From Chara braunii (lineage: Eukaryota > Plantae > Charophyceae): a stretch of DNA of 64,000 bases. Made by a program: the position numbers and the translations under genes. How positions within the stretch are numbered: position 1 is the stretch's first letter; each line of letters begins with the position of its first letter. Positions 28,919 to 61,300 of the stretch are shown in pieces. The stretch covers positions 3,071,036 to 3,135,035 of the forward strand of contig BFEA01000025.1 of assembly GCA_003427395.1 (NCBI GenBank). The letters run 5' to 3'. Under the pieces are notes generated by a model that ran no database searches, had not been told where the DNA came from, and saw only the letters and a list, made by a program, of their open reading frames with translations.

Positions 28919-31900
28919 ACAATACCACCGAATGCATTTGGGTTCAATTTCTGAATCCCTCAATTATGGCTACCCATGGTTGTTTTTTTGCTACCTATGC
29001 CACTCACGTACTAGGTGCCCCAAGCTGGCCCCATGTCTTTTCCCCTGTGTGCTTTTACTAGTACCGTCTTCAATCGAATAGAACGCCCGGTCAATACCGC
29101 CGTATTGGGTGCAACTTTCTGTCCAGATACGACAATAATTACCGGCTTTCTATTCGGGTGAAGACGGTAGTTAGTAACTTTCTCTACCTCCACGTCCCAC
29201 CCTTCACCACCTCCACTTCCCACCCTTTACCACCTCCACCTCCTACCTTTCACCTCCTCTCCTTCACTACAATTTTTTACAATCACCAATTTGTCCACAA
29301 TGTTTAGCTTTGCAACCTCTCCTTGTGCCTTTTTGTAACCTCCAATGGCTGCTACATCTTTTTTGTTCAAATTTCAAAACCTTTTAAGAAAAGAGTTAAA
29401 AAAGGCGGTCTTGTTCCTCCGGGCTCACGCGATCAGCTATCTATACGTCTCAGAGCTCATCACGCGATCAGCTATCTATAGTTGTGGGAGCTCACGAGAT
29501 CAGCTATATATAGGTCATGGAATGTGAAGGATGGCATATTTGTTTGGCAGTAGAGAAGCAACTGGATAACGACGGAAACCACGCTTGAGGCTTGATGGGG
29601 TTGTTTGGCCTAAAAGCACCCCTTTCGCAGTCTCATTGTTGTTGGGAGGGGCGGTGTGGGGGTGGGGTTTGGGCGGGGTGGGGGGGGAGGTGCAGGGGAG
29701 CTGTGGTGAGTCCAAGCAGAGAACATAAGCTACCAGCATTCCCATAGGATTGCTCTCCCCCCCCACCTTTTGTTTGTGTTTAAGAGGGGTGTGTTTTGTT
29801 AGTCAAAGTGTCGGGTCAGGTGGAGNNNNNNNNNNNNNNNNNNNNNNNNNNNNNNNNNNNNNNNNAACGCCATGCAAACAAAACACGGTATTGCTTATAT
29901 TCAATCAACTTTAAGTAACACTATAATTACCATAACAGATTCTTTTGGAGATACCAAATCTTGGTCCTCTTCTGGTTCAGTGGGATTTAAAGGATCTCGT
30001 CGTTCAACCAATTATGCTGCTCAAGCTACTGCTGAGAATGTAGCGCGTGCTGCTATTCCATTAGGAATTAAGTCAGTTGAAGTGAGAATCAAAGGTTTAG
30101 GTTATGGAAAGCCTTCGGCCTTACGTGGTTTACAATTAGGAGGTCTTATTATAACCAAGATTAGCGATGTAACTCCAACGCCACTAACAACCACTTGTGT
30201 TTCAATTTCTTCAGGTCTGNGTTTCATAGCTTTTTATGAGGTTGCACTGGGAGCCAGTGCTTGTTATATCAAATTCGCACCATGGATTTTGTCAGAAATG
30301 TTTGATGCTTCTTGGGGTTTTCTGTTTGATACTCTGACTGTGGTTATCAAATTCGCAGCATGGATTTTGTCAGAAATGTTTGATGCTTCTTGGGGTTTTC
30401 TGTTTGATACTCTGACTGTGTATATAACGTGCGTGTTTTTGGTAATCTAAGAGCTCGTGTCTTTCTCTGAATTTCAAAAGATTTGATAACGATCGCTAAT
30501 TTTTCAGTCATTTGTTCAAGTGTGTTTTTGATCGAGAGCTTATCTGTTCTGCCGAACGAAGAAAAACGCCTTAGAGTTGGAAGTTCCAAATTCATTGGTC
30601 AATCAGCAGGCTCGCCATAGTTTGATCGAAGACGAAACTTCGTAGTAATAAAATAAATACGCGCAGCTAACTAAATGCCATAAAGGCTGCGCGTACCAAG
30701 TTCACCCAGGCCAATTTGGCATGTGGTTTACCCGCTTGATCACAAAATCCAGATCTACTCAGGTTTTTTATTATATCAGAGATAGGTGCTTCCATTGTAA
30801 TATTGGTTTTCGTTCGGTCAGGAAAGAGACAGCGTTTTCCTATGTATTGCGTTGAATAAGAGCACACATACCAGGGCTCGAAGAGCGGGAACCAGGCCAC
30901 GAAGTGGCAACAGCACCTGAAGTGCAATCTGCATTCTCGTCCAACCTGACAGTTGGAATCCCATTTCGGGATGAGAGCATTTGGTGGAACCGGTGAACCA
31001 TTCAGGTCGAATGGGACAGAGGGCTCGTAGTACAATCTCGATTGAAAAGCAAGTTGTTGTTATTTATGCGGCTGTCAAAGGTTATTTAGATCAAATTCAG
31101 ATTTCTCAATTTCTTAAATATGAACAAGAGTTGTTGAAATCAATTGATCCAAGTTTGCTTTCTGCTATTGCACAACAAAAAATAATCACTGAACAAATCG
31201 ATAGTCAACTGGCTAACTTTTGTCAAAAATTTACTCAGAGTTTCTTAGCAACTCACTCGGGTTAATTCACCATTTTTCTATATCTTTGTGACTGTTTTGG
31301 GTGGGGTAATTGAGAAGCTGGCTCACTATGAAGAAAGGGCTATCATTAGTTTGTTAGGTGCTGACCTCTGTGTGTGTGTGTGTGTGTGATCATACGGCGT
31401 GTAGGTGCTGGATGTAGATCTGAATTGGCGGATGCATAAAGTGTCAGATGGGCAGCGGAGGCGTGTGCAGATTTGTATGGGCTTGCTCAGACCCTTCAAG
31501 GTGAGGAAGTGAAGCGCCACCCACAATTGGCATGGGCAAATTCTGTGTGACTTGTGTTCCCACTGGCAGTAACATCTTCCATCGAATGTATCCTGACTGC
31601 AAGACCATATGCGTGCAACCAGTTTGCATATACATTTGTCTAGTGTCGCATGCACCGTATTTGGTACTTGTAAAGATTCTACTTGCACAATTGAAGAGCT
31701 ACTTGCCTTCCGGCGTAGAGAACAACAATCCGCGTTCTACTGTCTTCCCCTGAGTACAACGCTCGGTCGTTATAGCCGTATTTGTGTCAGCTTTCAGTCT
31801 ACATACAGCTGTGATGACCGGGGGATTCTGTTCGGGGACATACATGTTGGTTGTATATTGCCCTCTCAAGCGCTGATAAATTTGCCCTTTCTTTCTTCCT

Positions 31901-32465
31901 TTCTTTCGTTCTTTCCTTTTTTATATTTGCCCTTTCGACCTTTGGCTCGCTGAGTCAGTGTGTTGGGACATAGATGTTGGTTGTATGTTGCCCTCTCCAG
32001 GGCTGATAAATTTTCCCTTTCTTTCTTTCTTTCGACCTTTCTTTCAACCTTTCTTTCTTTCGACCTTTCTTTCTTTCGACCTTTCTTTCTTTCTTTCGAC
32101 CTTTCTTTCTTTCGACCTTTCTTTCTTTCTTTCGACCTTTCTTTCTTTCTTTCTTTCGACCTTTCTTTCTTTCTTTCTTTCGAACTTTCTTTCTTTCTTT
32201 CTTTCGACCTTTCTTTCTTTCTTTCTTTCGACCTTTCGACCTTTCTTTCGACCTTTCGACCTTTCTTTCGACCTTTCGACCTTTCTTTCTTTCGACCTTT
32301 CAACCTTTCTTTCTTTCAACCTTTCTTTCTTTTGACCTTTCTTTCTTTCAACCTTTCTTTCGACCTTTCTTTCGACCTTTCTTTCGACCTTTCGACCTTT
32401 CGACCTTTCTTTCTTTCTTTCTTTTTTTCTTTCTTTTTTTCTTTTTTTCTTTCTTTTTTTTCTTT

Positions 32466-32517
<52 letters not shown>

Positions 32518-32590
32518 TCCTTCTTTCTTTCTTTCGACCTTTCGACCTTTCTTTCGACCCTTCTTTCGACCTTTCGACCTTCCTTCCTTC

Positions 32591-32625
<35 letters not shown>

Positions 32626-34253
32626 TCGACCTTTGGCTCGCAGAGCAGTTCTCTGTGACAAAAAATATACACGACTTCATTAGCTCCCTGCAGTCGTGCA
32701 GCCGGCAGGTTTCGTGTGGCAGTGGTCAGGGCCGTCACTATATGGCCATGCTGTGCCTTCAGTGCCAGTGGAGGCTCTGGAGTGTGTTTTCTGGCTGTAG
32801 CAGACCGTTCTTTGTTTTCTGGGGGCTTTGCTGGAATTTTGATGGGGTGCGAGTATAGTCTGTCGAGTCTTCCGCCTGCTGTGAGTGGGTTATAGTCTGC
32901 TTTGATTTGTTGTCATTCATACCCTTAACGGCAGGGATTGGTGGACCACCTGAGAACTGGGGTTAGATCACCAGTACGTGTTCCAGCTATTTTGTTACAA
33001 AGCGGTCGTTAACCCGCCATATATGAGGGGGCTCAGTCTACCGGACAAGAAGGGCCGGTGTCGCCAGGCAAATCGTGCATCACGCCGGTTCGGCGGGAAT
33101 TGGGGCGCAACAAATATCCTTGTCCGGGAAAAGAGGCTCGGACGGACTGTTGGTCTGTTGGTTTAAAACCGCCAGTACACGGCCCCAACCTTGCTGAAAA
33201 GAAAACTCGTCATCACCCATCCAAAAAAATCGGCGCCGGCGCGCCGTCGATAACAGAAACCGGCGGCCGGCGTCGCGTTTCGTCCCTCTGACACGGCCTC
33301 GCGGCCAATGTGAGGCATGTACCGGTGGTTTAATCTGGTTTAATCTGGATGATCGCGTACGGTATCATCCGACGAAACAGTCTGTGACAGCCCGCCGTAT
33401 CTTGTCCTTGACTCACTTTCTGGCCGATGCATGGTTCACTGATGAAACCGTTACGTGTCGGGTGTCGGTCTGCTGCGATCTGACGCTCTTGTCATAGGCA
33501 TGTAGGCACAGCCTGCTGTGTATGGCTCTAGTTTGGTTGGCAGGGTTGCAGGGTACAAGCTAAGGCAGTCAACATGTGATTGAAAGCTATACACCTGGTC
33601 CGTGTAATCTGTTCCATGGATTGGCGTCACGTCCAAATGTTCATGATGGCTGAGAAGCTGGCTTTGCTGGTGCTGTATGTGGACATCGGCCGCAGCACAG
33701 ACCTAAGAGCCTGAGGACCTCGAACTGTGCATTTGGTAACTTAACTTTTTAAAGGTTTTTAAAACTTTGAACTTTTTTTTTTTTTTTTGGCTTATTCTTT
33801 TTGGCCCCTTCTTCTTAAAGGGTGACGGCCTTGAGATATCATCGTCGAACTGATCCACCCTAGGTAATTCAGAATTGTAGTGTAGTTCACTCATCTGCTT
33901 CCAGTGGAGTTCGAACTCAGCACCTGGTCTGTATTTGAAATTGAACAGTACAGGGGGTGTACCAAATCTGGCCGGAAATATAGTTTGTATACATTCATTT
34001 TTAGGGTGCGTTATGTTCGGGGGAAGATGGCAGTTGGCATGTGCTTCTGGTAACTTACATAAAAAAAAAAAAGTTAAAAAAACCTTTAAAAAGTTAAGTT
34101 TCCAAATGCACAGTTCGAGGTCCGCAGGCTCTTAGGTCTGTGCTGCGGCAGAGTGAGAGGTTGGCTGTGAGATAGAACTCCTTGAGATNNNNNNNNNNNN
34201 NNNNNNNNNNNNNNNNNNNNNNNNNNNNNNNNNNNNNNNNNNNNNNNNNNNNN

Positions 34254-34324
<71 letters not shown>

Positions 34325-37298
34325 AGCGCATGCGGCTGAATGGTACACCCAGGAACTGGTGATAAACAGAGCCGAGTTCGAATGCTGATGGAATGAGAAG
34401 AGTAGTGGTGGTCCCCACTGTCCTTGTTTGTTTGAAGTAATGTAACTCAGTGGGGGCGATCGGTTGTACACGATGCTTGGTCAAGGCTGTTGCCTCTCTT
34501 TGAAAGAAGAAGAGAGTGGTGTGGTGTGGACAGACCCTAACTTAACAGGGTTATATGTAACTCCTTGAACTCTCTCTTTGAGTGGTGGTCCCCACTGTCC
34601 TTCTGCCCCGCTGGTCCAGGACCAAAGGATGGAACCAGAGGAGCAAACTCTCTTTGAGTGGTGGTCCCCACTGTCCTTCCATCCATTCTTTGAGGTTTGC
34701 TTTGCTGCACAGCGGACGAAACCTTGCTGAGCTTGGTGGCGGTGACAGCTGCCTGCTTTTTTTTTTTTTTTTTTTTTCTGATCATTGATCTAGAAAGCTG
34801 TTTGAAATCCTGCTGTCACTTGTCAGTAGGTTTGACGTCTGCACCTGTCATCGGTATTTTACTATTTTGACTTCTATTACAGCTGACCAGCTAAGGCAAC
34901 ATGCCGCAGGTGATAGGATTTGATTGCTATCTTGTGCAGGTCCTCTGCTTAATCAAATCACCGTTGATCAAGACATCTGTTTGAGATTCTATCATCAGGA
35001 ATTCTAGTTGTACGGTTGCCTGTCGGTTTGTATGGTTGCCCTTCGGTTTGTGTGGTTGCCCTGCGGTTTGCACGGTTGCCCTTCTACTGGTACGGTTGCC
35101 CTTCGACTTGCACACCTGCCCTTTGGTTTGTACGTTTTCCTTTTGGTTTGTGCCGTTGCCCTTTTGCACTTGGACTTGTATGCCTGCCCTTCAACTTGCA
35201 GGGTTGCCCTTTGATTTGTACAGCTGCCCTTTGATTTGTATGGCTGGCCGTCAAATTGTACTGTCGCTCTTCCACTCGTATGATTGCCTTTCAACTTGTA
35301 CAGTTGCCCTTCGACTTGTACAGTTGCCCTTCGACTTGTACAGTTGCCCTTCGACTTGTACGGCCGCCCTTCAACTCGTACAATTACCCTTCAACTTGTA
35401 CGGTTACCCTTCGGTTTGTATGGTTGCCCTTCCACTTGCACAGATGCCCTTCGACTTGTATTCGGTTTGTACTGTTGCCCTTGCACAGATGCCTTCAACT
35501 TGTATGGCTGGCGCTGAACTTGTACGGTTGCCCTTCTTCTTGCATGGTTGCCCTTCTACTTGTACGGTTGCCCTTCGACTTGTGCGGCTGCCCTTCAACT
35601 TGTACGATTACCCTTCAACTTGTACGGTTACCCCTCGGTTTGTATGGTTGCCCTTCCACTTGCACAGATGCCCTTCGACTTGTATTCGGTTTGTACGGTT
35701 GCCCTTCCACTTGCACAGATGCCCTTCAACTTGTATGGCTGGCGTTCAACTTGTACGGTTGCCCTTGTACTTGCGTGTTGCCCTTCTACTTGTACGGTTG
35801 CCCTTCGATTCGCGCGGTTGCTCTTCAACTTGTATGGTTGCCCTTTGACTTGCATGTTTGCCCAGCGGATGTAGGGTGATACCGACAGCAGGATTTGCTC
35901 TATGTCTTGTGCAGGTCCTGTAGGGTGATACTGACAGCAGGATTTGCTCTGTGTCTTGCGCAGGTCCTGCTACTTGACGAGATCACCGTTGATCTAGATG
36001 TGCTTGGACGTGCCGACCTGATGCAATTTCTTAAGTCCGAGTGCGAGGAGCGCGGTGCAACGATCATATATGCTACACATATATTCGATGGGCTGGAGAA
36101 CTGGTTCTCTCATATTGTGCGTAGAATCCTCTTCCCCTCCCCGTGTCTTTCTGCTCGCTCCTCCCCCCTTTCCCCTGTGTGCATCCGTCCCCTCCGGGCC
36201 TCCGTCCTTCAACCCTCTGTTGCCTGAGGACCACTGCAAAGAGTTACGACGGCTCTCCCGTTCAGCAACTTGTACTCCGCCGGAACTTGGCAAAGAACGA
36301 AAAAAGTGTCCACTTATTGCGAGTATATCATGCTTCCACGACAAGACAGGATCGTACACGACGTTCTTAGAATGATCTTCTTAGAATGTTCTTAGAATGA
36401 TCTTACACGACGCATTCATATGAACCCCGCTTTTCCACTTATTAACATGGCTTCAGACCGGGACGTAGTGCTCACACAACCCTTAATAATGTTATAAAGG
36501 AGAAGGATGCAAGGAAAAAAAAAAAGTGATAAAAAAGAGAGTAATAGCCAGCAATAAAGTTTTTTCACGATCCTTTGTTAGAACCTTGCATGGCGGGTAG
36601 TTTATCTGGGGCGGATGCCTTGTCTGGGGCGCTTACATAGTAATAATGTCAAAGGCAAAAAATCTGGCTATATGCAGAAACCTCCGCCAAGTATCCAATA
36701 ATGAATGCGTCGGTACGGACACTCAGCAGGGAAGGAAGTCTAAGACCGTACGGCTGCGACGACGGCGCGCTAGACTTTCAGGCCTCTCTCCTTCTCTTCC
36801 CCCCCCCTTTTTTTTTTTTTTCCCTTACTTTCTGTTTGTGTGTTTGTCAGACAACGGATGTCTTTCTGAATGGATTTGTCGGACAGCACATCTACCCTAT
36901 TGAGCTGCTCAGCTCCCTGCTGGTGGTCCCCACCAAGGCAACCGTTCCTGATAAGGGAAAGTTTCTTTTCGGATTGCAGTGTCGCGTCAACCACGGGCGT
37001 TAAGAAGAGAGGGGTGTTGTAGAACTGCCGTCTTCCCCTAAACACAACGCGCCCTCATTATGGCCGAATCCAACCAGAAAGATGGCTTGTATAAGTTCAG
37101 AATCAGGGTGCGGTAGTTGAATGAAGTTTAAAAACTTAAAATCGATTGCATCAGTTTGATGAACTTTGATCACAAATAATGACAATTCAAATTTCAAAAT
37201 GATGAAATTTGAAATTTCAAATTTGTTTCCACTTCCAACTCTGAACACTGAGATAAGTTCAGGGTAGAGGGGCGGACAAGGAAAAGTAGAAGTTGTCG

Positions 37299-37353
<55 letters not shown>

Positions 37354-40300
37354 CGAGAGTCGAGATTATCATGCACTGACGCCGCCGCAGCATTACAGAG
37401 TGCCAACATAGCAGCAGGAGCCTGGTAGCACTGCAATGAGGGAATGCGATTCCACGGCTGCACAACCTTTGAGCGACTGCACATGAAGAGCAGCTACGCG
37501 CTAAATGGATGCTGCCATTGCGAAAGTCTAGCTGTCCCTTTCCCCCACTGCACTCCAAACAGGCGCTCACAGCCACTAGTGTCTCGAGATCGGGTGGAGC
37601 TGTGTTGTCTTTGCTACCATCCCTTTTCTGTTGAAGTCTTAAAAATCCTTTTGATGCTTGCCAGTGAAAAGCTACCGAAATTCTTCTCTTCCCCCCCCCN
37701 CCCCCCTCCCCCCCCCCTCCTCCCCCCGAATGGATGGGGCATCAGCTAAGTCACTTAAGTGTTGTGTCAAAAAAGTAAAACAGGATAAGTTTAGGGTGTG
37801 GTTGGTTGAAGCATCTGTCGAGGATATGGGGGAGTCGGCATAATGAGAATTTGAAAGTGAGCTCAGAAAAAATCGGGGGATTTTTGGGAACAAACCTGGT
37901 TGGGTGAAGCAAATCTGGAGTCTCTAGAGTCTACACTTTGTTTATCTAGATTCGAGAATCTATCTAGATTCGTTTTTTTCAAAGGAAAAAAAAAAGAAAG
38001 AAAGAAAAAAAAAGAGAGGGAGAGGGACCGACTATAGCAGTCGTAATGGCATGACGATGACTAATTGATGTTTTCTTGTGGCTGTGGAACCTGCATCTCC
38101 CTGAGCACCGTCTTTCAGGCTTACGTTGCAGATGGCAGGCTGAAGCTGGCAAAGCCCAGGTCAGAAATAGCAGAACTGAAGCATATGTCTCTGATGGTAA
38201 GCAAGCACATTCCTTCTCATTCCTGTCTGTACATTGATGGTAGTATGGACTCTGTGCACTTTCTGCTCGATATATAGGTACATCATATATCGTCAATTAG
38301 ATATATATTATATATATAGGGTTCAGCCTCCTGATGAGTCGGTGAAACTCCGACGAAACAGTTTGTCACAGCCCCTCCTTTGTTGTCCTCTTCTCCCTCC
38401 CTCCCTCTCTGCCTAAGGTTTACCGGGCAGCTCTGTGTTATGAACCTGGTTGCTTGTTGTCAGAAGACTAACACTCACTCACATAGACTTCCATGCATGC
38501 CCATACATACACAGAAGGAAGGTGAGATGATAGGAGTATCACACCACACAGAGAGAATGAAACACAGCAGAAGCCATGTCCCGCCGATATGATATGACAG
38601 AATACCCTGAAAGTGCAATTCGCTCCACGGAGTCCCCACAACCAGTCACAAAGGAAAGTAGAGTAGATCACATCCAGGAAACAATGACGCAAAGATCGTC
38701 AACACACAGTATTGCATGGGTCCTGGGGACCATCTCACGCAAGTGTGTACATGCCATGCATCGTACTCCCACACACAATGAACAGTAGTCTGACAATAGA
38801 CAAANNNNNNNNNNNNNNNNNNNNNNNNNNNNNNNNNNNNNNNNNNNNNNNNNNNNNNNNNNNNNNNNNNNNNNNNNNNNNNNNNNNNNNNNNNNNNNNN
38901 NNNNNNNNNNNNNNNNNNNNNNNNNNNNNNNNNNNNNNNNNNNNNNNNNNNNNNNNNNNNNNNNNNNNNNNNNNNNNNNNNNNNNNNNNNNNNNNNNNNN
39001 NNNNNNNNNNNNNNNNNNNNNNNNNNNNNNNNNNNNNNNNNNNNNNNNNNNNNNNNNNNNNNNNNNNNNNNNNNNNNNNNNNNNNNNNNNNNNNNNNNNN
39101 NNNNNNNNNNNNNNNNNNNNNNNNNNNNNNNNNNNNNNNNNNNNNNNNNNNNNNNNNNNNNNNNNNNNNNNNNNNNNNNNNNNNNNNNNNNNNNTCAGCG
39201 CACAAGTGCACCAGCACTTCCACGCATTGCAGCCAGTGGAGATCTGGCGAGGAATGAGGCAGGCAGCTCTTTTAATAGTGCTGGCCACTCCTCGCTGGGT
39301 CTGCATTGGCTCAATTCAGCCTCTCCCTTTGTCCCAGACCCTGCATTGCATGTGTCCCGGTACAGTCCCAATGAGATTCAACTGCTGCTGAGGCACTTCG
39401 GCCTGGATTTGGACTTGAAAGTCTGGATCTGGACTGACCACTTGACTTAGACCAGAACTGGGACTGTACACAGACACACCCTTACTCGAACAGACATGAC
39501 ATACACATCTCCTGGTGAACAGGTAAGTCTTTTGACAATGCCCTTTGCCTTAGATTTAGATGTGCCTGTTGATAGAGAGCTTGACTTTTGACCTGTTTTC
39601 ACGTTTCTGAGCCCTGGCAAGATACCTTTTCACAATGCTTTACTTGTACAAGGCCCGTGCTGCTCTATTTTTACAAGGCCTGAGGCCTATATCGGGTAAA
39701 GGCCCTTTTAGTATCAACACTGTGTATTACACTCAGAGAGTCGTTTTGCCCGAATAGTCTCAGAACCATGGTGCGTTGCTCAGGAGTGAGCAGCGCTTCT
39801 TCCCAACCCCGAGTAACGGCTATCTGCCACTCCAGAACCCCTGAAACAACCAGCGGCGCCACCCAGATACTGCCTCCAGAGGGGAGCGCCACCCTGAAAC
39901 AGGCCCCTGAGGCCAAGCGCCTCTCAGAAGATGAAGAAGAAGACCAGCGCCAAAGTCTCTGATGAAAATGAAGTGCCAGAGGACTTCACTAGGGAAGATC
40001 TGCAGCAGCACCACCGTTCCTTTTTTTTTTTTTTTTTTTCCTTTCCTGACAAAGGAAATCTCTGAGGATGTAAGCTGCAGCTATGGCTGGCGCGCCACTA
40101 CCCTGAACCCTACTCCTGAGGAGGGTTCGACAGGGCACCAACTTCTGCCACTTCCAGCAGACGTCAGATAGCCCAGACCTCTGAGCAGCCCCACTTACTG
40201 CCAGAGAACAGCGAAGGACCCAGCTATGGACGACGCTTCGAGGGTCTGGCTATGTCTGTCTCTTTCTTCAACGCTGAAGCTGTCACCACTCCAGTTCACG

Positions 40301-42823
40301 CGTTGCGCCGCCGCGATCTGCAAAATGCCAATCGTCAAAAAGCCCTGAACAGACTTCCTCATTCTATTAATAGATCCACTCTAGCCTACACTCGACCAAC
40401 ACCGGACCTACTGGACCGACCGGTACCGTTTCTGTTTCGGCCTCTAGGGCCTCTCCTTACCCGGCTATAGGCTATAGGTCCAAGGTTGATGAGAAGTGTT
40501 CCACCAATTTACAGAGAATTTCATTATTGGTATATTTATTTATGAGACCTATACAAACAAAAAGAGAAGCTACGTCTGCAGAAAAGAATAGAAAACGTAG
40601 TGGACCTAAATGTAGGAAGTCTGGTTTTTACTCTTATATCAAGTTATATCATTATATGTGGTATTCATTCTTGTTTGACTCTTGGATTGAGATCTACAGA
40701 GTCTCAGCATAGGCCCTTAGGCCTGTCTGTCCACGTGGTAGCCCGGGCCTGCTATTCGCAGTTAGGGGGGACTAGAGGGAAATAGGATTAGTGGGGGTCG
40801 GTTGGTCTCTACGACTTTGCAGATATGTCCCTCACGTATTTCCCGACAGGCTGGTTTCCCGGTTAGTACACAGCAGAAACAAAATTACGAATCTGTCCTA
40901 CTATGTTACAGCCTCGCCTCGGTTCGACGGGGTGCAGGCTGCAGAATCAGCAAGTCATTGCATCTGTTTGACTATGTATAGGGTTGAGCCTCCAGATGAG
41001 TCGGCGAAACTCCCACGAAACAGTTTGGCACAGCCCCTCGTTTCTTGTCCTCTTCTCCCTCTCTGCCTACGGTTTACCGTCGGCAGCTCTGTTTGACGAT
41101 ATATACGACTACTTCGCTAACACACTGCTACGGTTTTCTCCGGTCAGGTCGAGCGGCCGTGGTCGGGGCCGTCACTACGCGGCCTTGCTGTGCCTCGAGT
41201 GCCAGCGGCGTGTCTAGAGTGTATTTTTTGGCTGTGACAGACCTTTCTTTGTTTCGTGGGTGTTTTGCTTGCTTGTGGCTTGGGATGGGGTGTGAACCGA
41301 CAGTCTGTAGAGTTTTCCATCAGGTGTGGGTGAGTGATAGTCTGCTTTGATTTTCGTCACGGGTACCTTGAGGGGCAGTGGTTGGTGGTCCCCACCACCA
41401 CCTCAGAGGGGTATTAGTTGTCGGGCAGTCGTTGATGCTTAACCACAACCGGGGTTCAGGCGGATTATCACTTACAGTGTAATCAGTCAGTTAAGGGATT
41501 CTGCAGACTGTTGAGGGTTCAGCCTCCTCCTGACGAGTGAGTCGGTGAAACTCCGATGAAACAGTTTGTCCTCTTCTTTGAAAATACTAAAATAGGAATG
41601 AAAGGTTTTCACGAGCGTTTCTTTCCTTTTTTTATCATTTGTTATGATTTTACAATCTTGAAATTTGAATACGTCAACTAAACGGCCTCGGCCCTCCGGT
41701 GAGACCAGACCCCTAAAAATGACGATGTTACATCACGCAAATTCCATACCGGTCTGCAGTTTGAAATCATGATCTTTTTTCTGACACAGTGACATGTGTG
41801 TGCCATACACACTGAGGCACATGGGCTGGGTGCAGTCTCGTTGTTGTTGTTGTTGTTTTTTTTTTTTTTTTTTTNTTTTTTTTTTTTTTTTTTCCCCAAC
41901 GAAATGCAGGAGATAGTCCGAGATACATATTGAATATAGCTGGAAACTCTGGAAACTGAGGATAGAGAGTCCCACAGTCCCTCTATCCTCCTCTTTTTTT
42001 TTTTGCGTCTGTCTCGCTTTTTTCTTTTCCCCCCTAACTTCCCTAAGTCCCTTTATTTATTTATATAGGGCCCAGTCTCCAAGGCAAAAATACAAGTGAG
42101 AGTTATGGTTGGCGTCGGCTGCAATTTCAGGGGCCTCTAGGCCTCCAGCCTCACTTCGGCAGGCAGAGACTGTCCCCCCCCTCGCTATTCTGAAGTGCAT
42201 TCTTTTTCAGTCCTGTCTGACTAGTGACTACCCTATTTACCCGAATAGAATGGAAGGTGATTGTCTCCGTATGGAGGCTGGAAGTTGCCCCAAATACGCA
42301 GCTATAATTAATTTACAACGTACGTTCTATTCGGGGGAAGGAGGTAGAAGCTCTTGCCTTATACATGAAGTGTTTTGTGCACTGTCCCCATCCTTTGTTG
42401 CAAGGTCTTGTCGGTCTGACGTCAGTGATGGTCTTGTGGTGGCAGGGTGCCCAGGGCAAGCTCTCTCCCCCCCCCCCCCCAATGATCAGGTCAAGCATTT
42501 TGCTGCTTTGTATCATTCTTTCTGAAAAACTTTGCCGCAGAATGTTTTCGTAACGTTCGATGCATGTGTGCTTGTTTTATCTTTTCTTTTCTTTTCTTTT
42601 CTTTTCTTTTCTTTTCTTTTCTTTTCTTTTGTTTGGGCAGAGAACCATAGAGTTATGGCTGCGCGCAGATGTTGAGCAGCAGCGAAAGGCCAGGAAGGAG
42701 CGGCGAGCGAGAGGCGAAAAGGGAAACCCGTTCGAGTCGGTCGTCGTTCAGAACAATGGGTGGGCGGCAGGCCGCATGTCGTCAACATTGAAAGGCAGTA
42801 GTAATTCCGTCCTGAGGCTCTGA
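17202..42823 (+). CDS. ABCI20: ABC transporter I family member 20-like soluble ABC ATPase (CAF16-like), 7 exons, ~334 aa
   Basis: Exons 17202-17442, 27813-27946, 28677-28796, 31405-31500, 35964-36116, 38119-38196 and 42641-42823 join in frame (1005 nt). They give Walker A GANGAGKTT, signature VSDGQRRRV, Walker B LLLDE, H-loop YATH and C-terminal NNGWAAGR, colinear with Arabidopsis ABCI20 as I recall it. Confidence 0.95.
19379..19581. repeat. ~32-bp repeats (one dispersed plus three tandem)
   Basis: CCGAATAGAACGCGGGGCCTTGACTGCGGATC. Confidence 0.82.
21383..21493. repeat. 21-bp minisatellite
   Basis: TAGGTGATTGATTAGGCCTAA. Confidence 0.85.
21926..22118. repeat. 33-bp minisatellite, about 6 copies
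   Basis: TTCCCGCCAAATAATAATTTCAACAGGTAAATG in tandem. Confidence 0.92.
23000..26068 (-). mobile_element. 5'-truncated, degenerate L1/Tx1-type LINE ORF2 (reverse transcriptase) in ABCI20 intron 1
   Basis: [31 protein letters not shown] and GGLGI motifs across frameshifted ORFs; AT-rich insert at about 23990-24290; 3' limit approximate. Confidence 0.88.
26641..26775. repeat. 27-bp minisatellite, 5 copies
   Basis: TAGTCTGGAAGAGTGTACACAAGTCTR. Confidence 0.92.
26903..26975 (+). mobile_element. tRNA-derived SINE-like head (copies at about 26288 +, 34333 +, 22332 -, 33898 -)
   Basis: A box TAGCTCAATTGGTA and B box GAGTTCGAATCC with a shared GAAATACAGACCC linker; no full cloverleaf. Confidence 0.65.
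27100..27810. repeat. degenerate GCT/ATG-rich repeat directly upstream of ABCI20 exon 2
   Basis: GCTATGGCTG / GCTGATGCTG units. Confidence 0.85.
27813..27946 (+). CDS. ABCI20: ABCI20 exon 2
   Basis: tgcAG|(G)[16 protein letters not shown]...YLGGE|GTGGGT; the phase matches exon 1. Confidence 0.93.
28677..28796 (+). CDS. ABCI20: ABCI20 exon 3 (GC donor)
   Basis: gcAG|[13 protein letters not shown]...RRRRLIQ|GCAAGA. Confidence 0.92.
29872..30183 (+). pseudogene. rps11: mitochondrial ribosomal protein S11 fragment (NUMT), lacks the C-terminal HNGCRP.. tail
   Basis: [23 protein letters not shown]...[14 protein letters not shown]...KGLGYGK...DVTPTP. Confidence 0.9.
30184..30420 (+). pseudogene. 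nad5: mitochondrial nad5 N-terminal fragment with a 78-bp tandem duplication (NUMT)
   Basis: [46 protein letters not shown]; the last 26 codons are repeated. Confidence 0.9.
30419..30511 (-). pseudogene. rps10: mitochondrial rps10 5' fragment (NUMT)
   Basis: [13 protein letters not shown]...[10 protein letters not shown] resembles the plant mitochondrial S10 N-terminus (..IVIKSF..LP....LYTVLRSPH). Confidence 0.75.
30690..30815 (-). pseudogene. group II intron maturase (domain X) fragment (NUMT)
   Basis: [35 protein letters not shown] resembles the domain X 'API..I...L...GFC...G.P' motif. Confidence 0.65.
30816..31033 (+). other. probable organellar group II intron fragment
   Basis: Non-coding GC-richer segment (..GAGAGCATTTGGTGGAACCGGTGAACC..) resembling plant mitochondrial intron sequence; lies between two NUMT pieces. 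Confidence 0.4.
31035..31265 (+). pseudogene. atp1: mitochondrial atp1 3' end fragment (NUMT)
   Basis: [19 protein letters not shown]...[13 protein letters not shown]-stop matches the ATP synthase alpha C-terminus. Confidence 0.9.
31405..31500 (+). CDS. ABCI20: ABCI20 exon 4
   Basis: gtAG|[32 protein letters not shown]|GTGAGG (not in the ORF track; translated by hand). Confidence 0.95.
32017..32633. repeat. compound (TTTC)n / TTTCGACC microsatellite
   Basis: Seen directly in the sequence. Confidence 0.9.
32640..33420 (+). mobile_element. diverged subfamily copy of the hammerhead element, interrupted
   Basis: 32640-32960 aligns with 41085-41410 (e.g. GGGCCGTCACTA..GCTGTGCCT, ATAGTCTGCTTTGATTT); 33368-33420 is CCGACGAAACAGTCTGTGACAGCCC.. 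Confidence 0.6.
35007..35856. repeat. 21-bp minisatellite array
   Basis: TTGTACGGTTGCCCTTCRACT units, degenerate. Confidence 0.9.
35964..36116 (+). CDS. ABCI20: ABCI20 exon 5
   Basis: gcAG|[12 protein letters not shown]...[16 protein letters not shown]|GTGCGT. Confidence 0.95.
38119..38196 (+). CDS. ABCI20: ABCI20 exon 6
   Basis: ttcAG|[26 protein letters not shown]|GTAAGC. Confidence 0.92.
38318..38437 (+). ncRNA. hammerhead repeat fragment equivalent to the 3' cleavage product (intact CTGATGA / stem II / GAAA core)
   Basis: (TA)n-AGGGTTCAGCCTC-CTGATGA-GTCGG-TGAAACT-CCGAC-GAAA-CAGTTTGT; the upstream stem III strand is missing. Confidence 0.75.
40980..41570 (+). mobile_element. hammerhead-bounded non-coding repeat (retrozyme-like monomer of ~534 nt plus the start of the next unit)
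   Basis: The same ribozyme motif occurs at both ends (40980-41030 and 41503-41570); internal sequence is shared with 44129-44496 and 32640-32960. Confidence 0.75.
41503..41569 (+). ncRNA. type III hammerhead ribozyme, degenerate copy
   Basis: GCAGACTG-TT-GAGG-loop-CCTC-CTGACGA-(GTGA insert)-GTCGG-TGAAACT-CCGAT-GAAA-CAGTTTGT. Confidence 0.7.
42641..42823 (+). CDS. ABCI20: ABCI20 exon 7 (terminal)
   Basis: (CTTTT)n tract...gcAG|RTIELWLR...[26 protein letters not shown]. Confidence 0.92.
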   Translation, partial: RTIELWLRADVEQQRKARKERRARGEKGNPFESVVVQNNGWAAGRMSSTLKGSSNSVLRL

Positions 42824-43682
42824 CCAAAAATACAGCAAGTTCTCTGCAAACAAAAAGGTAAAAAAACAGATGGTTAAAACGAGAAAGTAAAGTGAACAAA
42901 AAAAAGAGCACCTGCTGTGCAGCCGTGCGCATGCAACAAAAATAAAATATAAGGAAAAAAAAAAAAAAAGATAGATTATTTTTTTTCGTAGGCTAATGCA
43001 ACAAAAATGCTAAGAATGAAAAAATAATGACCTATTTCAACATACATGTCCTTCGTCGGATCTGTGGGCGCCTGCTGTGCAGCCGTGCGCATGACATCGA
43101 AAAGGGTTTGTTTGGACTTCGAAGTTTGAACTTGAAGCTTGTTGAGGGTTCGTAAAAGTAAATGGAGACTTTTCTGTCTCTTTTTTTTTTATTTGTGAGA
43201 GGGGTAGGGGGAAGGAGGAGAGGAGGGGGACGAATAGTGTGTGGGCTGCCAAAAATCTTGTCGAGAATCAATAAAGCATTACGGGGTTGAAGTCGGTGAG
43301 TCAATGGAGACTTTTCTGTCTATTTATGTGTGAGAGGGGTAGGGGGAAGGAGGAGGAGAGGAGGGGGACGAATAAAGGTAAAAGCCATGCGGAGTCGCGG
43401 ACAGAGCACCTGATCTGTAGGCTATTTGATCGTCGAGTCACTGGCTGTTTTTTTTTTGTTTTTGTTTTTGTTTGTTTTGTTTTGTTTTGTTTTTTGAACT
43501 TTTTTTCCCTTGCGATTGTAATGAGTGAAAAACGGTACGCCAGGGATCTTGCAGGCCGCATGAAAAATTATGCAAGGGTACATTTGTAAATCTTGCAAAT
43601 TTGGATGGCATAGCTGTGTATCACTGTATCTGCAATTTCGGGAAATGCAGTTTTGGGAAACAGAAAGGTGGACATTTGTGAT

Positions 43683-43766
43683 GTCCTCCTTCGGGACATC
43701 CGTTTAAATTGGAACGATACAGAGAAGATTGATTAGCATGGCCCCTGCGCAAGGATGACACACATA
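43683..43766 (+). pseudogene. U6: U6 snRNA copy, 5' portion (interrupted)
   Basis: GTCC..TTCGGGACATCCG..AAATTGGAACGATACAGAGAAGATT(GATT)AGCATGGCCCCTGCGCAAGGATGACACACATA; ACAGAGA box and ISL present; 4-nt GATT duplication; no clear upstream USE or TATA. Confidence 0.9.
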
Positions 43767-43987
43767 TCCTGATGAATCGGTGAAACTCCGACGAAACAGT
43801 TTGTCACAGCCCCCTTGATTGTTGTCCTCCTCTCCCTCTCTGCCTACGGTTTACCGGGCAGCTGACTATATATATATTGTCAAATAGAACTGCCCGGTAA
43901 ACCGTAGGCAGAGAGGGAGAGGAGGACAACAATCAAGGGGGCTGTGACAAACTGTTTCGGCGGAGTTTCACCGATTCATCAGGATAT
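43764..43987. repeat. 98-bp-arm fold-back inverted repeat of the hammerhead element
   Basis: 43764-43861 is the reverse complement of 43890-43987 with one mismatch; 28-nt TA-rich spacer. Confidence 0.92.
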
Positions 43988-44128
43988 ATACATGTACAAG
44001 AATATTGTGATGAAATCTTAATTACAGATGACCATACAGAAGTAGGAAACATGATTGCTAGGATTGAGCCTGCTATATACTGTTTGTGACGATATATTAT
44101 ATAAATATATATAATGTTATATATATAT

Positions 44129-44627
44129 ATGAGTCGGTGAAACTCCGACGAAACAGTTTGTCACAGCCCCTCGTTTGTTGTCCTCTTCTCTCTCTCTGCC
44201 TACGGTTTACCGGGCAGTTCTGTTTGTGACGATATATATTATAAATATATATTAGTTTTCCATCTGGTGTGGGTGAGTGATAGTCTGCTTTGATTTCCGT
44301 CACAGGTACCTTGAGGGAAGTGGTTGGTGGTCCCCACCACCTCAGAGGGGTATCAGTTGTCGGGCAGTGGTTGATGGTTAACCACAACCGGGGTTAAGGT
44401 GGATTATTACTTAGAGTGTAATCAGTATGGGATTCTGCAGACTGTTGAGGGTTCAGCCTCCTCATGGGTCGGTGAAACTCCGATGAAAAAGTTTGTTATC
44501 GGCAAACAGAACTGCCCGGTAAACTATAGGTAGAGAGGGAGAAGAGGACAAGAAACGAGGGGCTGTGACAAACTGTTTTGTCGGAGTTTCACGGACTCAT
44601 CAGGAGGCTGAACCCTGAACAGTTTGC
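44129..44627. mobile_element. internally deleted hammerhead-element monomer, next ribozyme copy (44437-44496, +) and inverted copy (44503-44627, -)
   Basis: Direct alignment to 40980-41570; cores are mutated (CTCATGG on +; GAAA to AAAA on -). Confidence 0.78.
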
Positions 44628-44768
44628 GGTGAATCTGGACGTGTTTGTGGAGACGTGCAGTTCAGGAAACTCAACACCATTTCTGCACATCTCCGCAAAA
44701 GCGTCCAGATTCAGGCGTTGAGGTAGCTCAACGCTGCTATTGGGACTTGGCCCCAGAGGGCAGTCGGT

Positions 44769-44810
44769 AAGGATGACACGCATAATTTGAGAAATGGTTC
44801 AGTTTCTTTT
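44769..44810 (+). pseudogene. U6: U6 snRNA copy, 3' portion
   Basis: AAGGATGACACGCATAATTTGAGAAATGGTTCAGTTTCTTTT matches the plant U6 3' end. Confidence 0.85.
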
Positions 44811-57782: not shown

Positions 57783-60700
57783 CATGTGTTTGAACCATAC
57801 TTGCGGCGCACCGGCATTATGCGCAGCGCGCTGTGCGCAGACCCGAGGTGCGCACGTGCGCCGCGCGTCTGGGTGCATGGTGCGCTGCGCACATGCCTGG
57901 TGCGCTGGGGAATGCGCATCTGCAGCCCGCATATGCGCCAGGTGCGCACATCTTTTTTTGTTTTTGTTTTTGTATGTTGCATTGGAGATCACACACACAC
58001 ACACACACACTTTTTTTTTCTTTTTCTTTAATGTTGCATTGGAGAGCACACACAACACACACACACACACACTCTGGAGGATTGATGCTGCCGCTGCGCA
58101 CAACAACTTTACAGATTAACCCACAAAATGTCCTCGGGGCGGCGATTAGAACTTAGTACTTACCTTGGGGTTGGTTGAGCAATGTGCGTGTAATCAGAGA
58201 GGAAGCATGTTCGTTTTTCAAACACAAGCAGAAACAAGAAACATCACAAGATTCAAGACAAAAGAAAGTGTTAGACTCGGTATCCCGAAAGCCGTAGCTT
58301 GCGAAGTTCGTAGTCTTACAAGCACGGAAGCAAGCAAGCAAGCACACACTACCCTCAAAATACTCATTCGTGATTCTGCGAAAAGTAAGGGCTACTCGTC
58401 CTGCTCCCTCGAGTGTTCCTCCCCGTGAGACTCCGCATACGACGTGACCTTCTCCGACTCATCCCCGTTCGGCTCTCCACTATCATCCGATCTTTGGGAC
58501 AGTTCCTCCTACTCAATCTCCTGCGGCGCACTGTCGTCCGACGATGACAATGACGATGATGATGAAGAAGATTTATTTTTCCGCTTACGACACAAATTTT
58601 CTTCATTGTCTTCGATCACCTCACAGTTGTTCTCCTCCTTCGCAGGCCTTGCTGCCTTGGCTACTGCAGCTTTTGCTGCCTCTCCACGTGCTGCTAATGC
58701 AGTTGTTCTCCTCCTTCGCAGGCCTTGCTGCCTTGGCTCCTTCTTCGTCGGCGAAAGACGAGGCCGCCTTTTTTTTTTTGTTGTGGAACATCCCCCTCCC
58801 CAACATTCCTCTTTCCTTTCTCAACCTGCAGTTTTTCAACAACGTCCGCTGCTGTTGCCTTCTTTTTGCGTCGCCCGCGACCCGACACCACCTCCCTCCC
58901 CTGCACCCAATCGTCGCTTTGACGCGCCTTCAAGGCACGGGCACGACCCTCCAAGGTATACAAAAACCCGAGATCGGGTTCTTCAAGACCCAACTTCCTG
59001 CGCAACTCCTGCATTCGGTGCGTTCCAGGCTTGCGTGGTATGTTCTCTCCAGTGCACCGAGCACGACAATGTCGTCCTCATCATCAGCAAAGTTCTCCTC
59101 CTCGTTGCTCTTCAACCATGTACGCGCCAGTGGGGCATCATTGCATTCTTTGTTGCGGACCTCCGTTGCAGCAACATCACCGGCTGTCCCTTCCCTAACT
59201 TTCGCGGCCCATTGGTCGTACCACTCCTCCACTTCTGTTATCGCCAACATCATCATCCTTCTGCGGAATGTGTATGTCTTCCCCGTTCCCTTGCTCTCTT
59301 CGCGTCGACAATTGGATATTCCAATTGTTATAGCTTACTCAATCTCTCCGGTAAGAGTTTCGTGTGGCGTTGGCTGTAAATGAGGTGGTGTAAGCTCCAG
59401 TTTCGCTCATATCCAGCCGAAGAGCTCGTCTGGCCAAGAAGTTTGGTTGCCTGCAGTTGGAGGAGGTCCAGGGACCCCCCGAACGCCTCCCACCATAGCG
59501 CCAGAGTTTTCAAACTCGCCTGCTCCCTTGCATTCTGTGTCCCCAAAGTGCCCAATCCCTGCACCCACATGTCCACCTGTTTGCTGATTTCTCGCTACAA
59601 CAACTCCGGCGGCGCCCAAAAATAAAGCCAGATGTTGAACCCCTCGCAAATCTGCATGTCTCTCAACGTGTGCGTCATATACTCGGGATCAAGGAAGATG
59701 GCCACGCAATGCAGCTCTGATGTCATGAAGGCCCACCGGTCCATCAAAATCTTCTCCACGTTCGCCTTCTCAGCGTCCAACAGGCCGTCGAGGGTGCGCA
59801 TAGTAGCCACAACCGCGTCCATGCCAAAATAGACTTTGCTCATAGTTGCTCCTGGACCGTCCACCAAACGAAGGAGCTTGACAACAGGCTTCATCACCGC
59901 CAGAGTCATGTCCACATCCTTCCAGAATCCATTTGTGTCCATGATGATGTGGGTGACAACGTTGAATGGAGCCACCTGCTCCCCCCTCACCAACTTCTCT
60001 ACCCACGCCACGTTGCAGACACAATGCTCCAATAGATTCCTCCCCGTGCTAAGCGACAGAAGCATCTCAAAGTTCGTCGTGAATCTAGTGACCGTCGAGC
60101 GTTTGAGTTGCGCATCCGCGATCCTGTTGTACATAGCACGAACCTTGTCGACGTTGGTGAAAAACTTGCCAACTTTATTGTCGTTGTCGACGACCGTTTT
60201 CAAGCAATCTATGTAGGTGTACATGTCCTCCAGGGCCAAATCCAAGGCATGGGTTGTGCAACCCACACTAAAGATTCCAAGGTACTTAGCATCCGCCATC
60301 TCCCCCGCTTTAGCGCAAACCTTCGCATTGTCCATCACAACGCCGACAATGGACGCCGCACTGATCTCCTGGATCACCCCGTCCAACATCTTGAAGTACG
60401 TTGTGGAATCATTTTCCCTCCCCTCCATGCAGACAGACTTCGAAAACACTGTTCCGGCCGGGAAAGAGACCATGACATTCAGATGCGGTTTGTTCCTCCA
60501 GTCCGACCACCCGGCCATTTGGAGCATGCATCCTGTTCTCTCCCACTTCTTCACTAGTGACTGCGTGTCTTCTCCCACCAATTTAAATTGTCCGTCCAAC
60601 TGTTTGGTCCTCATCTTGTCCCTCTTGCTAGACCACCAACTAGGATGACACTTCTTCACAACATCGAGGAACTCGAGAAAGCAGAAGTTCTCCACCATGT

Positions 60701-61300
60701 TGAATGGCTGATTCGTGCAAATCAGCCACCGATCCATCTTCCGACCCGCGTGCTCGTTTCGGGTGATGATAGTGTCTGCCTCCTCGAGCAAAGTTTGCCT
60801 CACCGACCGTCCACACCACTTCCCGGGGCAGGAGCGAAGATGTTTGCAGATCTTGCAGGCGAGGTCGTCTCGCCATCACTTGGTCTGCGTGTTGGTGATG
60901 ATGGAGGCACGAAACTGTTGGAAGACGGTCCTGTGCTCCGACCACCACTTCCCCCAATTCCACCTACGAGATGAGTGGCCTGGTGCTTCCCCAGCCTGAT
61001 GCCCTTGATTCTCGTGAGCCTTTCCTCCGCGGTCAATGCCCGAGTGACAAGCTCAATATTGCACTTCGTCAAGAAGTGCCTCTTCCGTGCCGACGAACCG
61101 GGTCTCACAATAGTTGCAGAGCCAGTGCCTCAACCCCTTGCCGGGGTCCTTGCCGCGAGGACCTTCATCAGTGAAGTGCCTCACGAACGATTGTATGATT
61201 TGCTTCGCCAGTGTCGCCGACATCTTCACCTGCACACACACAATCCACAAACAGCCAAGGCGTCGACCCCTCTTCAACACTCTTCAAAGAAATAGCGTCC
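57783..61300 (-). mobile_element. hAT DNA transposon relic (BED finger, DUF659/RNase H-like DDE, hATC dimerisation), frameshifted
   Basis: WLCNYC..HFLTKC, (D>A)GWSD, MDNA, CTTHALDLALED, TRF and SSSAGYERNWS in ORF pieces 58930-61222; TGCGCA-rich subterminal region 57800-57950; the other end may lie in the N gap. Confidence 0.88.

Follow-up and report, generated by a model that had tools for sequence, protein, structure and literature searches.

Decayed copies of a non-coding Chara braunii retroelement with a type III hammerhead consensus and probable ties to Penelope-like elements

Introduction

Hammerhead ribozymes are already known from Chara braunii, in which Craig et al. 2021 described hammerhead-bearing Penelope-like elements (PLEs) of the Chlamys group, comprising Chlamys-2_cBra, with a canonical 3' hammerhead ribozyme (3'-HHR), and the PLE-X families (PMC8557442). 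Typical habits of PLEs include 5' truncation, the formation of pseudo-LTRs and inverted copies, and the use of microsatellites as targets, which are (TA)n for Naiad and Neptune and mostly (CA)n or (C)n for Chlamys (PMC8557442). Non-autonomous Chlamys elements that form head-to-tail copies have been reported from Chlamydomonas (PMC8557442), and putative retrozyme sequences with tandem hammerheads were noted earlier in algae and Selaginella (PMC5680766). In the papers cited here, type I hammerheads go with PLEs and non-LTR retrozymes, and type III with plant LTR retrozymes (PMC4209133, PMC7761336, bioRxiv 10.64898/2026.07.22.740005), which makes a type III hammerhead on an element of the former kind an unusual pairing.

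Here we analysed a repeat family in a 64,000-nucleotide stretch of C. braunii DNA (the window). A preliminary description had read this family as a non-coding, LTR-less, tandem-type element with a type III ribozyme, and had regarded the combination as apparently undescribed. The last claim stands only in part: hammerhead-bearing PLEs have been published for this very species (PMC8557442), as have retrozyme sequences from algae (PMC5680766), although the association of a type III hammerhead with a non-LTR element is indeed unusual.

Results

Copies of the motif in the window

We searched the window with a 31-mer that spans stem II, GAAA and the 3' strand of stem III, allowing up to three mismatches. 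Eight matches were found (38336, 40998, 41539, 43774, 44131 and 44466 on the forward strand; 43947 and 44568 on the reverse strand), against 0.00 expected from shuffles. The eight copies listed in the preliminary description, together with a diverged one at 33368, are all real, and we identified one further copy, internally deleted, at 44058–44128. BLAST of the unit against the window confined the family to 32.7–44.6 kb. The copy cluster is surrounded by (TA)n-rich DNA, and most junctions fall within (TA)-rich runs. The features of the region are as follows.

32640–33440, forward: older related unit, matching the 5' region with 74% identity across 244 nt
38318–38436, forward: copy 1, starting at A1.2 right after a (TA)-rich run
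38805–39194, no strand: assembly gap, between copies and inside none
40980–41096, forward: copy 2, starting at A1.2 after TATGTAT
41097–41575, forward: copy 3, the longest, with a 5' region of ~415 nt and a complete hammerhead at 41503–41569
43683–43766, forward: U6 snRNA sequence, about the first 84 nt (74.3 bits); context outside the element, ending where the fold-back copy starts
43768–43863, forward: left arm of the fold-back pair, its 5' truncation point lying in stem I immediately ahead of CUGAUGA, with G10.1 changed to A
43871–43987, reverse: right arm of the fold-back pair, truncated where the left arm is and sharing its private substitutions
44058–44128, forward: internally deleted copy, the first ~14 nt from A1.2 joined to the last ~18 nt of the tail and followed by (TA)n
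44131–44253, forward: 5'-truncated copy starting at core G8 directly after (TA)n
44254–44496, forward: copy with a dead but complete hammerhead (44437–44496) and the last ~185 nt of the 5' region
44497–44635, reverse: inverted copy with a complete hammerhead and tail, the best Rfam match

None of these copies is intact, as had been stated at the outset. Each carries its own disabling mutation or 5' truncation, and the defects are private, differing from one copy to another. Copy 1 retains CUGAUGA, stem II, GAAA and the 3' strand of stem III, which amount to the 3' two-thirds of the hammerhead, and its CT-rich tail is shortened at the 3' end. In copy 2, core U4 is changed to A (CAGAUGA), stem II has a mismatch and the final base of stem III is altered; its tail is full, ending in GACGA(TA)n, and it forms the upstream partial copy (pseudo-LTR) of a partial tandem. 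The hammerhead of copy 3 is disabled by a 7-nt insertion between stems I and II, and the tail of this copy is missing beyond a 20-nt deletion. The copy at 44131–44253 has an intact stem II, GAAA and 3' strand of stem III, and a full tail ending in GACGA(TA)n. Three changes (G5 to C, A9 to G and C15.2 to A) mark the hammerhead of the copy at 44254–44496, which ends immediately past stem III, and the inverted copy beyond it carries G1.1 to C, a stem II mismatch and G12 to A.

The two arms of the fold-back pair (43764–43987) are 98 nt long, 99% complementary and flanked by TA, and their tails face each other across (TA)5. The left arm abuts the broken end of the U6 snRNA sequence. A weak match to the 3' half of U6 is present at 44766–44808 (22.2 bits), and the copy cluster within the U6 sequence has an apparent flanking repeat of ~16 bp. 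Elsewhere the window holds a plastid rps11 insert that is 100% identical to Characeae; this insert supports a host within the Characeae, and so the assignment to Chara.

The diverged copy at 33368 lies within an older relative of the whole unit, ~800 nt long (32640–33440), and is 78% identical over 55 nt that span stems II and III and extend into the tail. This older unit has ~260 extra nt in its middle and follows what is left of the tail of another copy upstream. We considered whether the 33368 copy is a second hammerhead, as a candidate 5' strand of stem III at 33143, ~215 nt upstream, pairs with its changed 3' strand. We did not count it as one, because the intervening core is non-canonical and the older unit gives no match to Rfam Hammerhead_3.

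The nearest copy before the assembly gap ends at 38436 and the next starts at 40980. Because no copy touches the gap and neither of its edges resembles the unit, the finding is independent of continuity over 38805–39194, and the only value that the gap makes unreliable is the spacing from 38318 to 40980.

The consensus folds as a type III hammerhead

All conserved core bases (CUGAUGA...GAAA) of a canonical type III hammerhead reappear in the majority consensus of the copies. The consensus contains C3, U4, G5, A6, N7, G8 and A9, G12, A13 and A14, the A15.1–U16.1 pair and H at position 17, a full set found in no single copy. The minimum-energy fold of the consensus (−22.7 kcal/mol) is a three-way junction, whose stems I, II and III measure 4, 5 and 9 bp, respectively. 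Both this fold and the Rfam alignments of the copies have the type III topology, in which loops cap stems I and II while stem III is open. The triplet at U17 is GUU, and stem I has a 6-nt loop. GUC and a longer stem I are the commoner forms, which counts against the assignment.

These results bear out the type III consensus of the preliminary description, both in the completeness of its core and in the hammerhead being the predicted minimum-energy structure. The compatible variation in stem III is likewise as described, with A–U in the inverted copy (44503), G–U in the other copies and a possible G–C in the copy at 33368. Every one of these changes is one-sided and only three copies hold both strands of stem III, so two-sided covariation cannot be shown. 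The Infernal check against Rfam Hammerhead_3 (RF00008) that had been proposed for the copies gave a mixed outcome. Four copies aligned to the model in full (positions 1–54), at 44570–44625 on the reverse strand (32.1 bits), 41505–41567 (28.7 bits), 38316–38364 (26 bits) and 44439–44494 (18.5 bits), but none reached the gathering score of 48.5 bits. The best single copy had E = 2.7e-5 in a local search. The remaining 51.5 kb of the window contained no hammerhead match at E up to 1, and the Rfam scan gave no match to Hammerhead_1.

We also found that an unrelated hammerhead from phage-like metagenome contigs, which passes the Rfam threshold with 53.6 bits, has exactly the same 29-nt module of core, stem II and loop 2. 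A metagenome scan with this 29-nt core returned two contigs of one phage-like genome only, and no further copies of the algal element. Among the copies in the window, catalytic positions differ in 6 of 71 cases and tail positions in 41 of 433, so that the core is no better conserved than the tail. This comparison is not a valid test in either direction, because no excess of core conservation is expected in dead retrocopies. Given that no copy is intact, that the scores are below threshold and that the core is not better conserved, it is the consensus and the 5' ends of the copies that carry the argument for a ribozyme.

Three copies start next to the predicted cleavage site

Cleavage by the consensus hammerhead is predicted 3' of U17. 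Three independent copies (38318, 40980 and 44058) share the start base A1.2, one nucleotide past the predicted scissile bond, a coincidence with a simulated p of ~1e-6 to 2e-5 under uniform truncation. Longer copies continue past the predicted site into a matching 5' strand of stem III. Starts that lie one base after the predicted site point to past reverse transcription of self-cleaved RNA, and provide indirect evidence that the type III hammerhead may once have been self-cleaving. The shared start is A1.2 and not G1.1, which counts against this reading.

Structure of the unit

The unit is ~535 nt long, with the hammerhead ~120 nt from its 3' end. The copies have a common 3' end, in which the shared tail terminates in GACGA(TA)n. 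Their 5' ends vary: three copies start at A1.2, and others inside stem I, at G8, at −17 or in the 5' region. The distance from cleavage site to cleavage site between copy 2 and copy 3 is about 533 nt (40980–41512), and the predicted fold of these 533 nt is more stable than those of shuffled sequences (z = −3.3). Sequencing runs presumed to be RNA contained 25–42% of the words sampled from the DNA under study, an observation that we did not count as evidence. The junction between tail and 5' start at 41096/41097 recurs in the older copy near 32660. Inverted pairs are also present in the region (I1, I3 and I7), of which I1, the fold-back pair, is arranged tail to tail, not the usual form. The junctions of the copies lie in (TA)n, where target duplications cannot be read.

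ORFs overlapping the unit do not exceed about 100 aa, and a spurious 101-aa ORF across it had no matches in the protein collection. Among the 30 window ORFs of at least 150 aa, we found no reverse transcriptase (RT), GIY-YIG or gag domain, the only matches being DUF659 and plastid rps11; no RT domain was found in the window. A tRNA-Met primer site was absent from 32 to 45 kb at up to two mismatches, and the five matches elsewhere in the window are at chance level. The copies contain no 300–400-bp direct repeats that could be LTRs, and consist instead of truncated segments and partial tandems. The element is thus non-coding and LTR-less, as first proposed. Its designation as tandem-type was correct in that partial tandems exist (40980–41575 and 44131–44496), but overstated, since these amount to fewer than two units, form no arrays and are mixed with truncated and inverted copies in (TA)n.

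Comparison with described systems

The Chlamys PLEs of C. braunii (PMC8557442) share with the Chara unit the host lineage, a hammerhead near the 3' end, and the occurrence of 5'-truncated copies, partial tandems and inverted copies inserted at microsatellites; they are spread genome-wide. Compared by description, the Chara unit differs in being about 535 nt long and lacking an ORF, and in having (TA)n as its target where theirs is usually (CA)n or (C)n. The topology of their hammerhead is unstated in the main text of PMC8557442. Non-autonomous Chlamys elements of Chlamydomonas reinhardtii, such as MRC1 (PMC8557442), are also short and non-coding; they form pseudo-LTRs, occur as head-to-tail copies and rely on an autonomous PLE whose 3' end they share. 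By contrast with the Chara unit, they lack canonical hammerheads, and they inhabit another host.

Metazoan non-LTR retrozymes (Cervera and de la Pena 2020, PMC7229834; 10.64898/2026.07.22.740005) resemble the Chara unit in being non-coding and without LTR, primer site or polypurine tract; they can also be likened to it in that the hammerhead recurs in each unit and in their probable dependence on PLEs. They differ in their type I hammerheads, whose stem III is often weak and requires dimers, and in their units of 150–400 nt in long tandem arrays, whereas the Chara unit is of type III, with a stable 9-bp stem III, a length of about 535 nt and partial tandems only. Plant LTR retrozymes (Cervera et al. 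2016, PMC4918200) have the type III topology, the non-coding character, the streptophyte host and a monomer of several hundred nucleotides between cleavage sites in common with it. Their 300–400-bp LTRs, tRNA-Met primer site, polypurine tract and mobilization by gypsy elements have no counterpart seen here, and their 4-bp target duplications would not be legible at junctions in (TA)n. Relative to Rfam RF00008 itself, the core, the three helices and the stem II/loop 2 pattern (GUC..UGAAA..GAC) are the same, whereas all window copies score below threshold, the triplet is GUU instead of GUC and stem I is short.

Discussion

We propose, with a probability of roughly 60%, that the copies are decayed retrocopies of a ~535-nt, non-coding, non-autonomous Chara retroelement that bore a once-active type III hammerhead and was mobilized by PLEs. 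From the family, the consensus hammerhead, the unit structure and the junctions present in the window, we infer steps of transcription, cutting and priming. The element would have been transcribed, often from partial tandems, and its hammerhead would have cut between U17 and G1.1. A reverse transcriptase would have primed on a (TA)n nick by means of the GACGA(UA)n 3' end of the element, such that copying of uncleaved RNA would yield long copies with the whole ribozyme and copying of cleaved RNA would yield ~120-nt copies that start at the cleavage site. Once inserted, the copies would decay neutrally, and hence none would be active now. Release of ~533-nt monomers from tandem copies, and their circularization, could also have occurred.

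The enzyme would most likely have come from a PLE of the Chlamys group, the element riding on the Penelope-like retrotransposons already reported with hammerheads in C. braunii. A shared 3' end in (TA)n, variable 5' truncation, partial tandems and inverted twins are hallmarks of target-primed insertion by PLEs. This suggested link is one of pattern, as the window holds no autonomous element with a matching tail. Three points count against the PLE form: the fold-back pair is arranged tail to tail whereas two-sided priming expects head to head, the targets published for Chlamys are mostly (CA)n or (C)n instead of (TA)n, and the PLE hammerheads described in the papers cited above are of type I. 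A stronger version, which we consider distinctly less probable and offer tentatively, is that the unit is a true streptophyte non-LTR retrozyme of type III, mobilized by Chlamys-type PLEs and able to give circular RNA.

Some of the same evidence would suit a self-standing non-LTR retrozyme or satellite with no sequence kinship to PLEs, whose tandem transcripts are cut to ~533-nt monomers, circularized and copied by a non-PLE reverse transcriptase such as that of a LINE. The ribozyme spacing of about 533 nt, the stability of that stretch (z = −3.3) and the lack of LTRs and of a primer site all agree with it, and 5' truncation with a microsatellite-like 3' end also fits LINE-type priming. We nevertheless regard it as improbable, as the tandems in the window are partial, under two units and not arrays, PLEs more typically produce inverted twins and junctions between partial tandems (PMC8557442), and a 2026 preprint argues that even animal non-LTR retrozymes are PLE derivatives (10.64898/2026.07.22.740005). 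It is less probable still that the hammerhead is a chance fold that never cleaved, with 'AGGGTTCAG' marking no more than the element's natural 5' terminus. In favour of a chance fold, no Rfam score reaches the threshold, the core is no better conserved than its flanks, and the four Rfam matches are not independent because they are all copies of one sequence. Such a fold would, however, have to account for a consensus that has every conserved position and three helices as its minimum-energy structure, for E = 2.7e-5 in the local search with the best single copy and for the identity of the 29-nt core module to a hammerhead that passes the threshold. It would also have to place the supposed natural 5' end within 1 nt of the predicted scissile bond by coincidence, while longer copies read through that point into the matching 5' strand of stem III.

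Two further explanations are contradicted by the arrangement of the copies, and we consider both very unlikely. Type III topology is a hallmark of plant retrozymes (PMC4918200) and would favour a plant-type LTR retrozyme mobilized by Ty3/gypsy elements, but the copies have no 300–400-bp direct repeats around a central region, the region lacks a tRNA-Met primer site even with 2 mismatches, and junctions in (TA)n with variable 5' ends contrast with defined LTR ends, which would carry 4-bp duplications. The TA-flanked, 99% complementary arms of 98 nt at 43764–43987 could instead suggest a fold-back DNA transposon or MITE whose inverted repeats hold the motif by chance. Those arms, however, are a 5'-truncated piece of a longer unit that is found elsewhere singly and in direct orientation, and the single copies have no terminal inverted repeats.

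Read as PLE-mobilized retrocopies, the family is a modest variant of the PLE-linked hammerheads of C. braunii and not a new system: the general phenomenon of hammerheads on PLEs in this species is already published, and every copy in the window is dead. If type III topology and PLE dependence hold genome-wide, plant-lineage type III hammerheads would first have been carried by Penelope-like, target-primed elements, which would bear on the origin of plant retrozymes and of hammerhead viroid-like RNAs. If the element is truly a non-LTR retrozyme, it would break the rule that pairs non-LTR elements and PLEs with type I and LTR elements with type III. The type III hammerheads of plant LTR retrozymes and of viroid-like RNAs could then have come from it by vertical descent within the streptophytes, whereas PMC7761336 proposes horizontal transfer. 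Copies with their 5' end at the cleavage site may constitute a fossil record of ribozyme activity in vivo, one that could be counted across the genome with no need for RNA data.

Hammerhead copies and their decay

We searched the window with a 31-mer that runs from stem II through GAAA and along the 3' strand of stem III, and also read the region directly. Eight matches with three or fewer mismatches were found, against none expected in shuffled sequence, which confirms the eight copies of the preliminary description at their positions. BLAST of the window with the composite unit (40975-41580; 43726-43767 masked) confined the hammerhead family to 32.7-44.6 kb. Alignment gave nine recent copies, including an internally deleted one at 44058, and an older relative of the unit lies at 32640-33440. 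An assembly gap (38805-39194) falls between copies, the nearest of which ends at 38436 and the next of which starts at 40980; its edges showed no resemblance to the unit by BLAST, so continuity across the gap affects one spacing value only.

At Rfam gathering thresholds, the sole call in the whole window was a U6 snRNA. With E-value reporting, the Hammerhead_3 model (RF00008) aligned over its full length to four copies, which score 32.1, 28.7, 26 and 18.5 bits; all four fall below the gathering threshold of 48.5 bits. In the other 51.5 kb of the window, Rfam found no hammerhead with E of 1 or less. As had been proposed, no single copy is intact, each carrying its own defects or a 5' truncation.

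Defects of the copies, from the alignment and consensus (hammerhead position numbering)
40980: U4 to A
41503: stems I and II separated by a 7-nt insertion
44437: G5 to C, A9 to G
44503 (-): G12 to A, G1.1 to C
43768 and 43890 (-), twins: G10.1 to A
Four copies: truncated at the 5' end

The majority consensus, scripted from the alignment of the copies, restored every conserved hammerhead base. Its minimum-energy structure (-22.7 kcal/mol) is the hammerhead junction, with, in order, a stem III of 9 bp, U17, a stem I of 4 bp with a 6-nt loop, CUGAUGA, a stem II of 5 bp with a 7-nt loop, and GAAA, in agreement with the type III fold originally suggested. Differences from the consensus were no rarer at catalytic positions (6/71) than in the tail (41/433), indicating that the copies decay neutrally, like dead retrocopies. 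Such decay is evidence neither for nor against an active master copy. The ribozyme ancestry of the family is well supported, and every copy in the window is dead.

The algal family has exactly the 29-nt core, stem II and loop 2 of an unrelated hammerhead from two phage-like metagenome contigs, a textbook type III ribozyme that scores 53.6 bits, above the Rfam threshold. We read this identity as convergence on the family consensus rather than kinship. Two small ORFs, separated by a short gap, flank the metagenome hammerhead on a phage-like contig. Searches of metagenome and protein collections yielded no additional copy of the algal element.

Metagenome hammerhead
Ga0114902_1000484, 8190-8244 (-): phage-like contig
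Ga0114903_1000585, 3440-3494 (+): phage-like contig

Anatomy of the unit and probable traces of past cleavage

The hammerhead is followed by a CT-rich tail of ~75 nt ending in GACGA(TA)n. In the copy at 41097 and the older copy at 32660, this tail is followed by the same 5' start (CGACT...), and the recurring junction defines a DNA unit of ~535 nt that consists of the 5' start, a ~415-nt 5' region, the hammerhead and the tail, with an upstream partial copy serving as a pseudo-LTR. The stretch from one predicted cleavage site to the next (40980-41512; 533 nt) folds more stably than its shuffles (z = -3.3). The unit contains no ORF above ~100 amino acids, reverse transcriptase, nuclease and gag domains were absent from all 30 larger ORFs of the window, and no tRNA-Met primer site was found in the hammerhead region. 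These results bear out the description of a non-coding element lacking LTRs.

Three copies (38318, 40980 and 44058) all start at A1.2, one base past the predicted scissile bond (U17/G1.1), and the DNA immediately 5' of each is unrelated and mostly TA-rich. Assuming uniform truncation and six independent 5' junctions, the chance that three share a position no more than 1 nt from the site is p ~1e-6 over the whole unit and p ~2e-5 when limited to its last 140 nt. Copies 41503, 44437 and 44503 (-) continue past A1.2 into a matching 5' strand of stem III, so A1.2 is not simply the start of the element. The simplest reading of the A1.2 starts is reverse transcription of self-cleaved RNA.

Junctions of the copies lie mostly within (TA)-rich runs, and copies are inverted relative to each other in two places. 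In one of these, a 99% fold-back, both arms have the same truncation point and the same private substitutions. In this fold-back (43764-43987), 98 nt are 99% complementary and the tails face each other across (TA)5; a secondary palindromic duplication about the self-complementary (TA)n seems likelier than two separate insertions.

Neighbouring sequences

The U6 snRNA sequence (43683-43766; 74.3 bits) stops after ~84 nt, and the fold-back hammerhead copy starts at precisely this point; no TATA-like box is visible upstream of the U6 sequence. A weak match to the U6 3' half lies ~1 kb downstream (44766-44808; 22.2 bits), where ~16 bp of the break region are repeated. Either the ~1-kb cluster split a U6 copy, or template switching produced a U6-retroelement chimera. 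At 4440-4541 (-), a third U6-like match is again weak (23.7 bits).

Two direct repeats of ~110 nt, 180 nt apart, lie between hammerhead copies at 43120-43370, with the layout GGAGACTTTTCTGTCT ... purine-rich GGGGTAGGGGGAAGGAGGAG ... GACGAATA, and may belong to a second short repeat family. Close upstream of the older copy of the element lie a long minisatellite with a 20-nt period (~45 copies of GTTGCCCTTC-type units) and an array of (CTTT)n/(CTTTCGAC)n (34981-35870 and 31945-32640).

An intact 192-amino-acid ORF (29872-30450, +) encodes in its N-terminal half plastid ribosomal protein S11 (rps11), 100% identical to a Characeae protein, followed by a weak match to the NADH dehydrogenase chain 5 N terminus; a 78-nt tandem duplication (30267-30422) follows the S11 half. 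This is an organelle DNA insert within nuclear DNA, and the S11 identity agrees with Chara braunii as the host. A group II intron domain match (19797-19871, +; 37.2 bits, threshold 40, E = 5e-4) may be further organelle-derived DNA. A 402-amino-acid ORF (59595-60803, -) contains a DUF659 domain (E = 6e-30), which is typical of hAT-type transposase-derived proteins.

Element class and ribozyme topology

Plant LTR retrozymes are defined by their LTRs, by a primer site and by 4-bp target duplications (PMC4918200). The window copies do not fit this class: LTRs and a tRNA-Met primer site are absent from the region, and junctions in (TA)n would mask a duplication. C. braunii carries three types of Chlamys, a group of Penelope-like elements (PLEs), of which Chlamys-2_cBra has a canonical 3' hammerhead (Craig et al. 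2021, PMC8557442), and its families of the PLE-X type also have canonical hammerheads (PMC8557442). PLEs are often 5'-truncated, form pseudo-LTRs from partial tandems, occur next to inverted copies and insert into microsatellites, and non-autonomous Chlamys elements form head-to-tail copies that have only their 3' ends in common with autonomous ones (PMC8557442). The window copies match this PLE pattern, a likeness by pattern only. The element is best classed as a non-autonomous, probably PLE-dependent hammerhead retroelement of Chara.

PLE hammerheads, including those of Selaginella, are described as type I (PMC4209133). A 2020 review (PMC7761336) and a 2026 preprint (10.64898/2026.07.22.740005) link type I to PLEs and non-LTR retrozymes, and type III to the LTR retrozymes of plants. 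Under this pairing, a target-primed element that lacks LTRs but carries a type III ribozyme whose stem III is stable is off-rule. The earlier suggestion of an undescribed combination is not supported as worded, since hammerhead PLEs of C. braunii are published (PMC8557442); what survives of it is the unusual pairing of topology and element. The off-rule combination may already be present in supplementary file S2 of Craig et al. The ribozyme topology of the Chara element is unusual.
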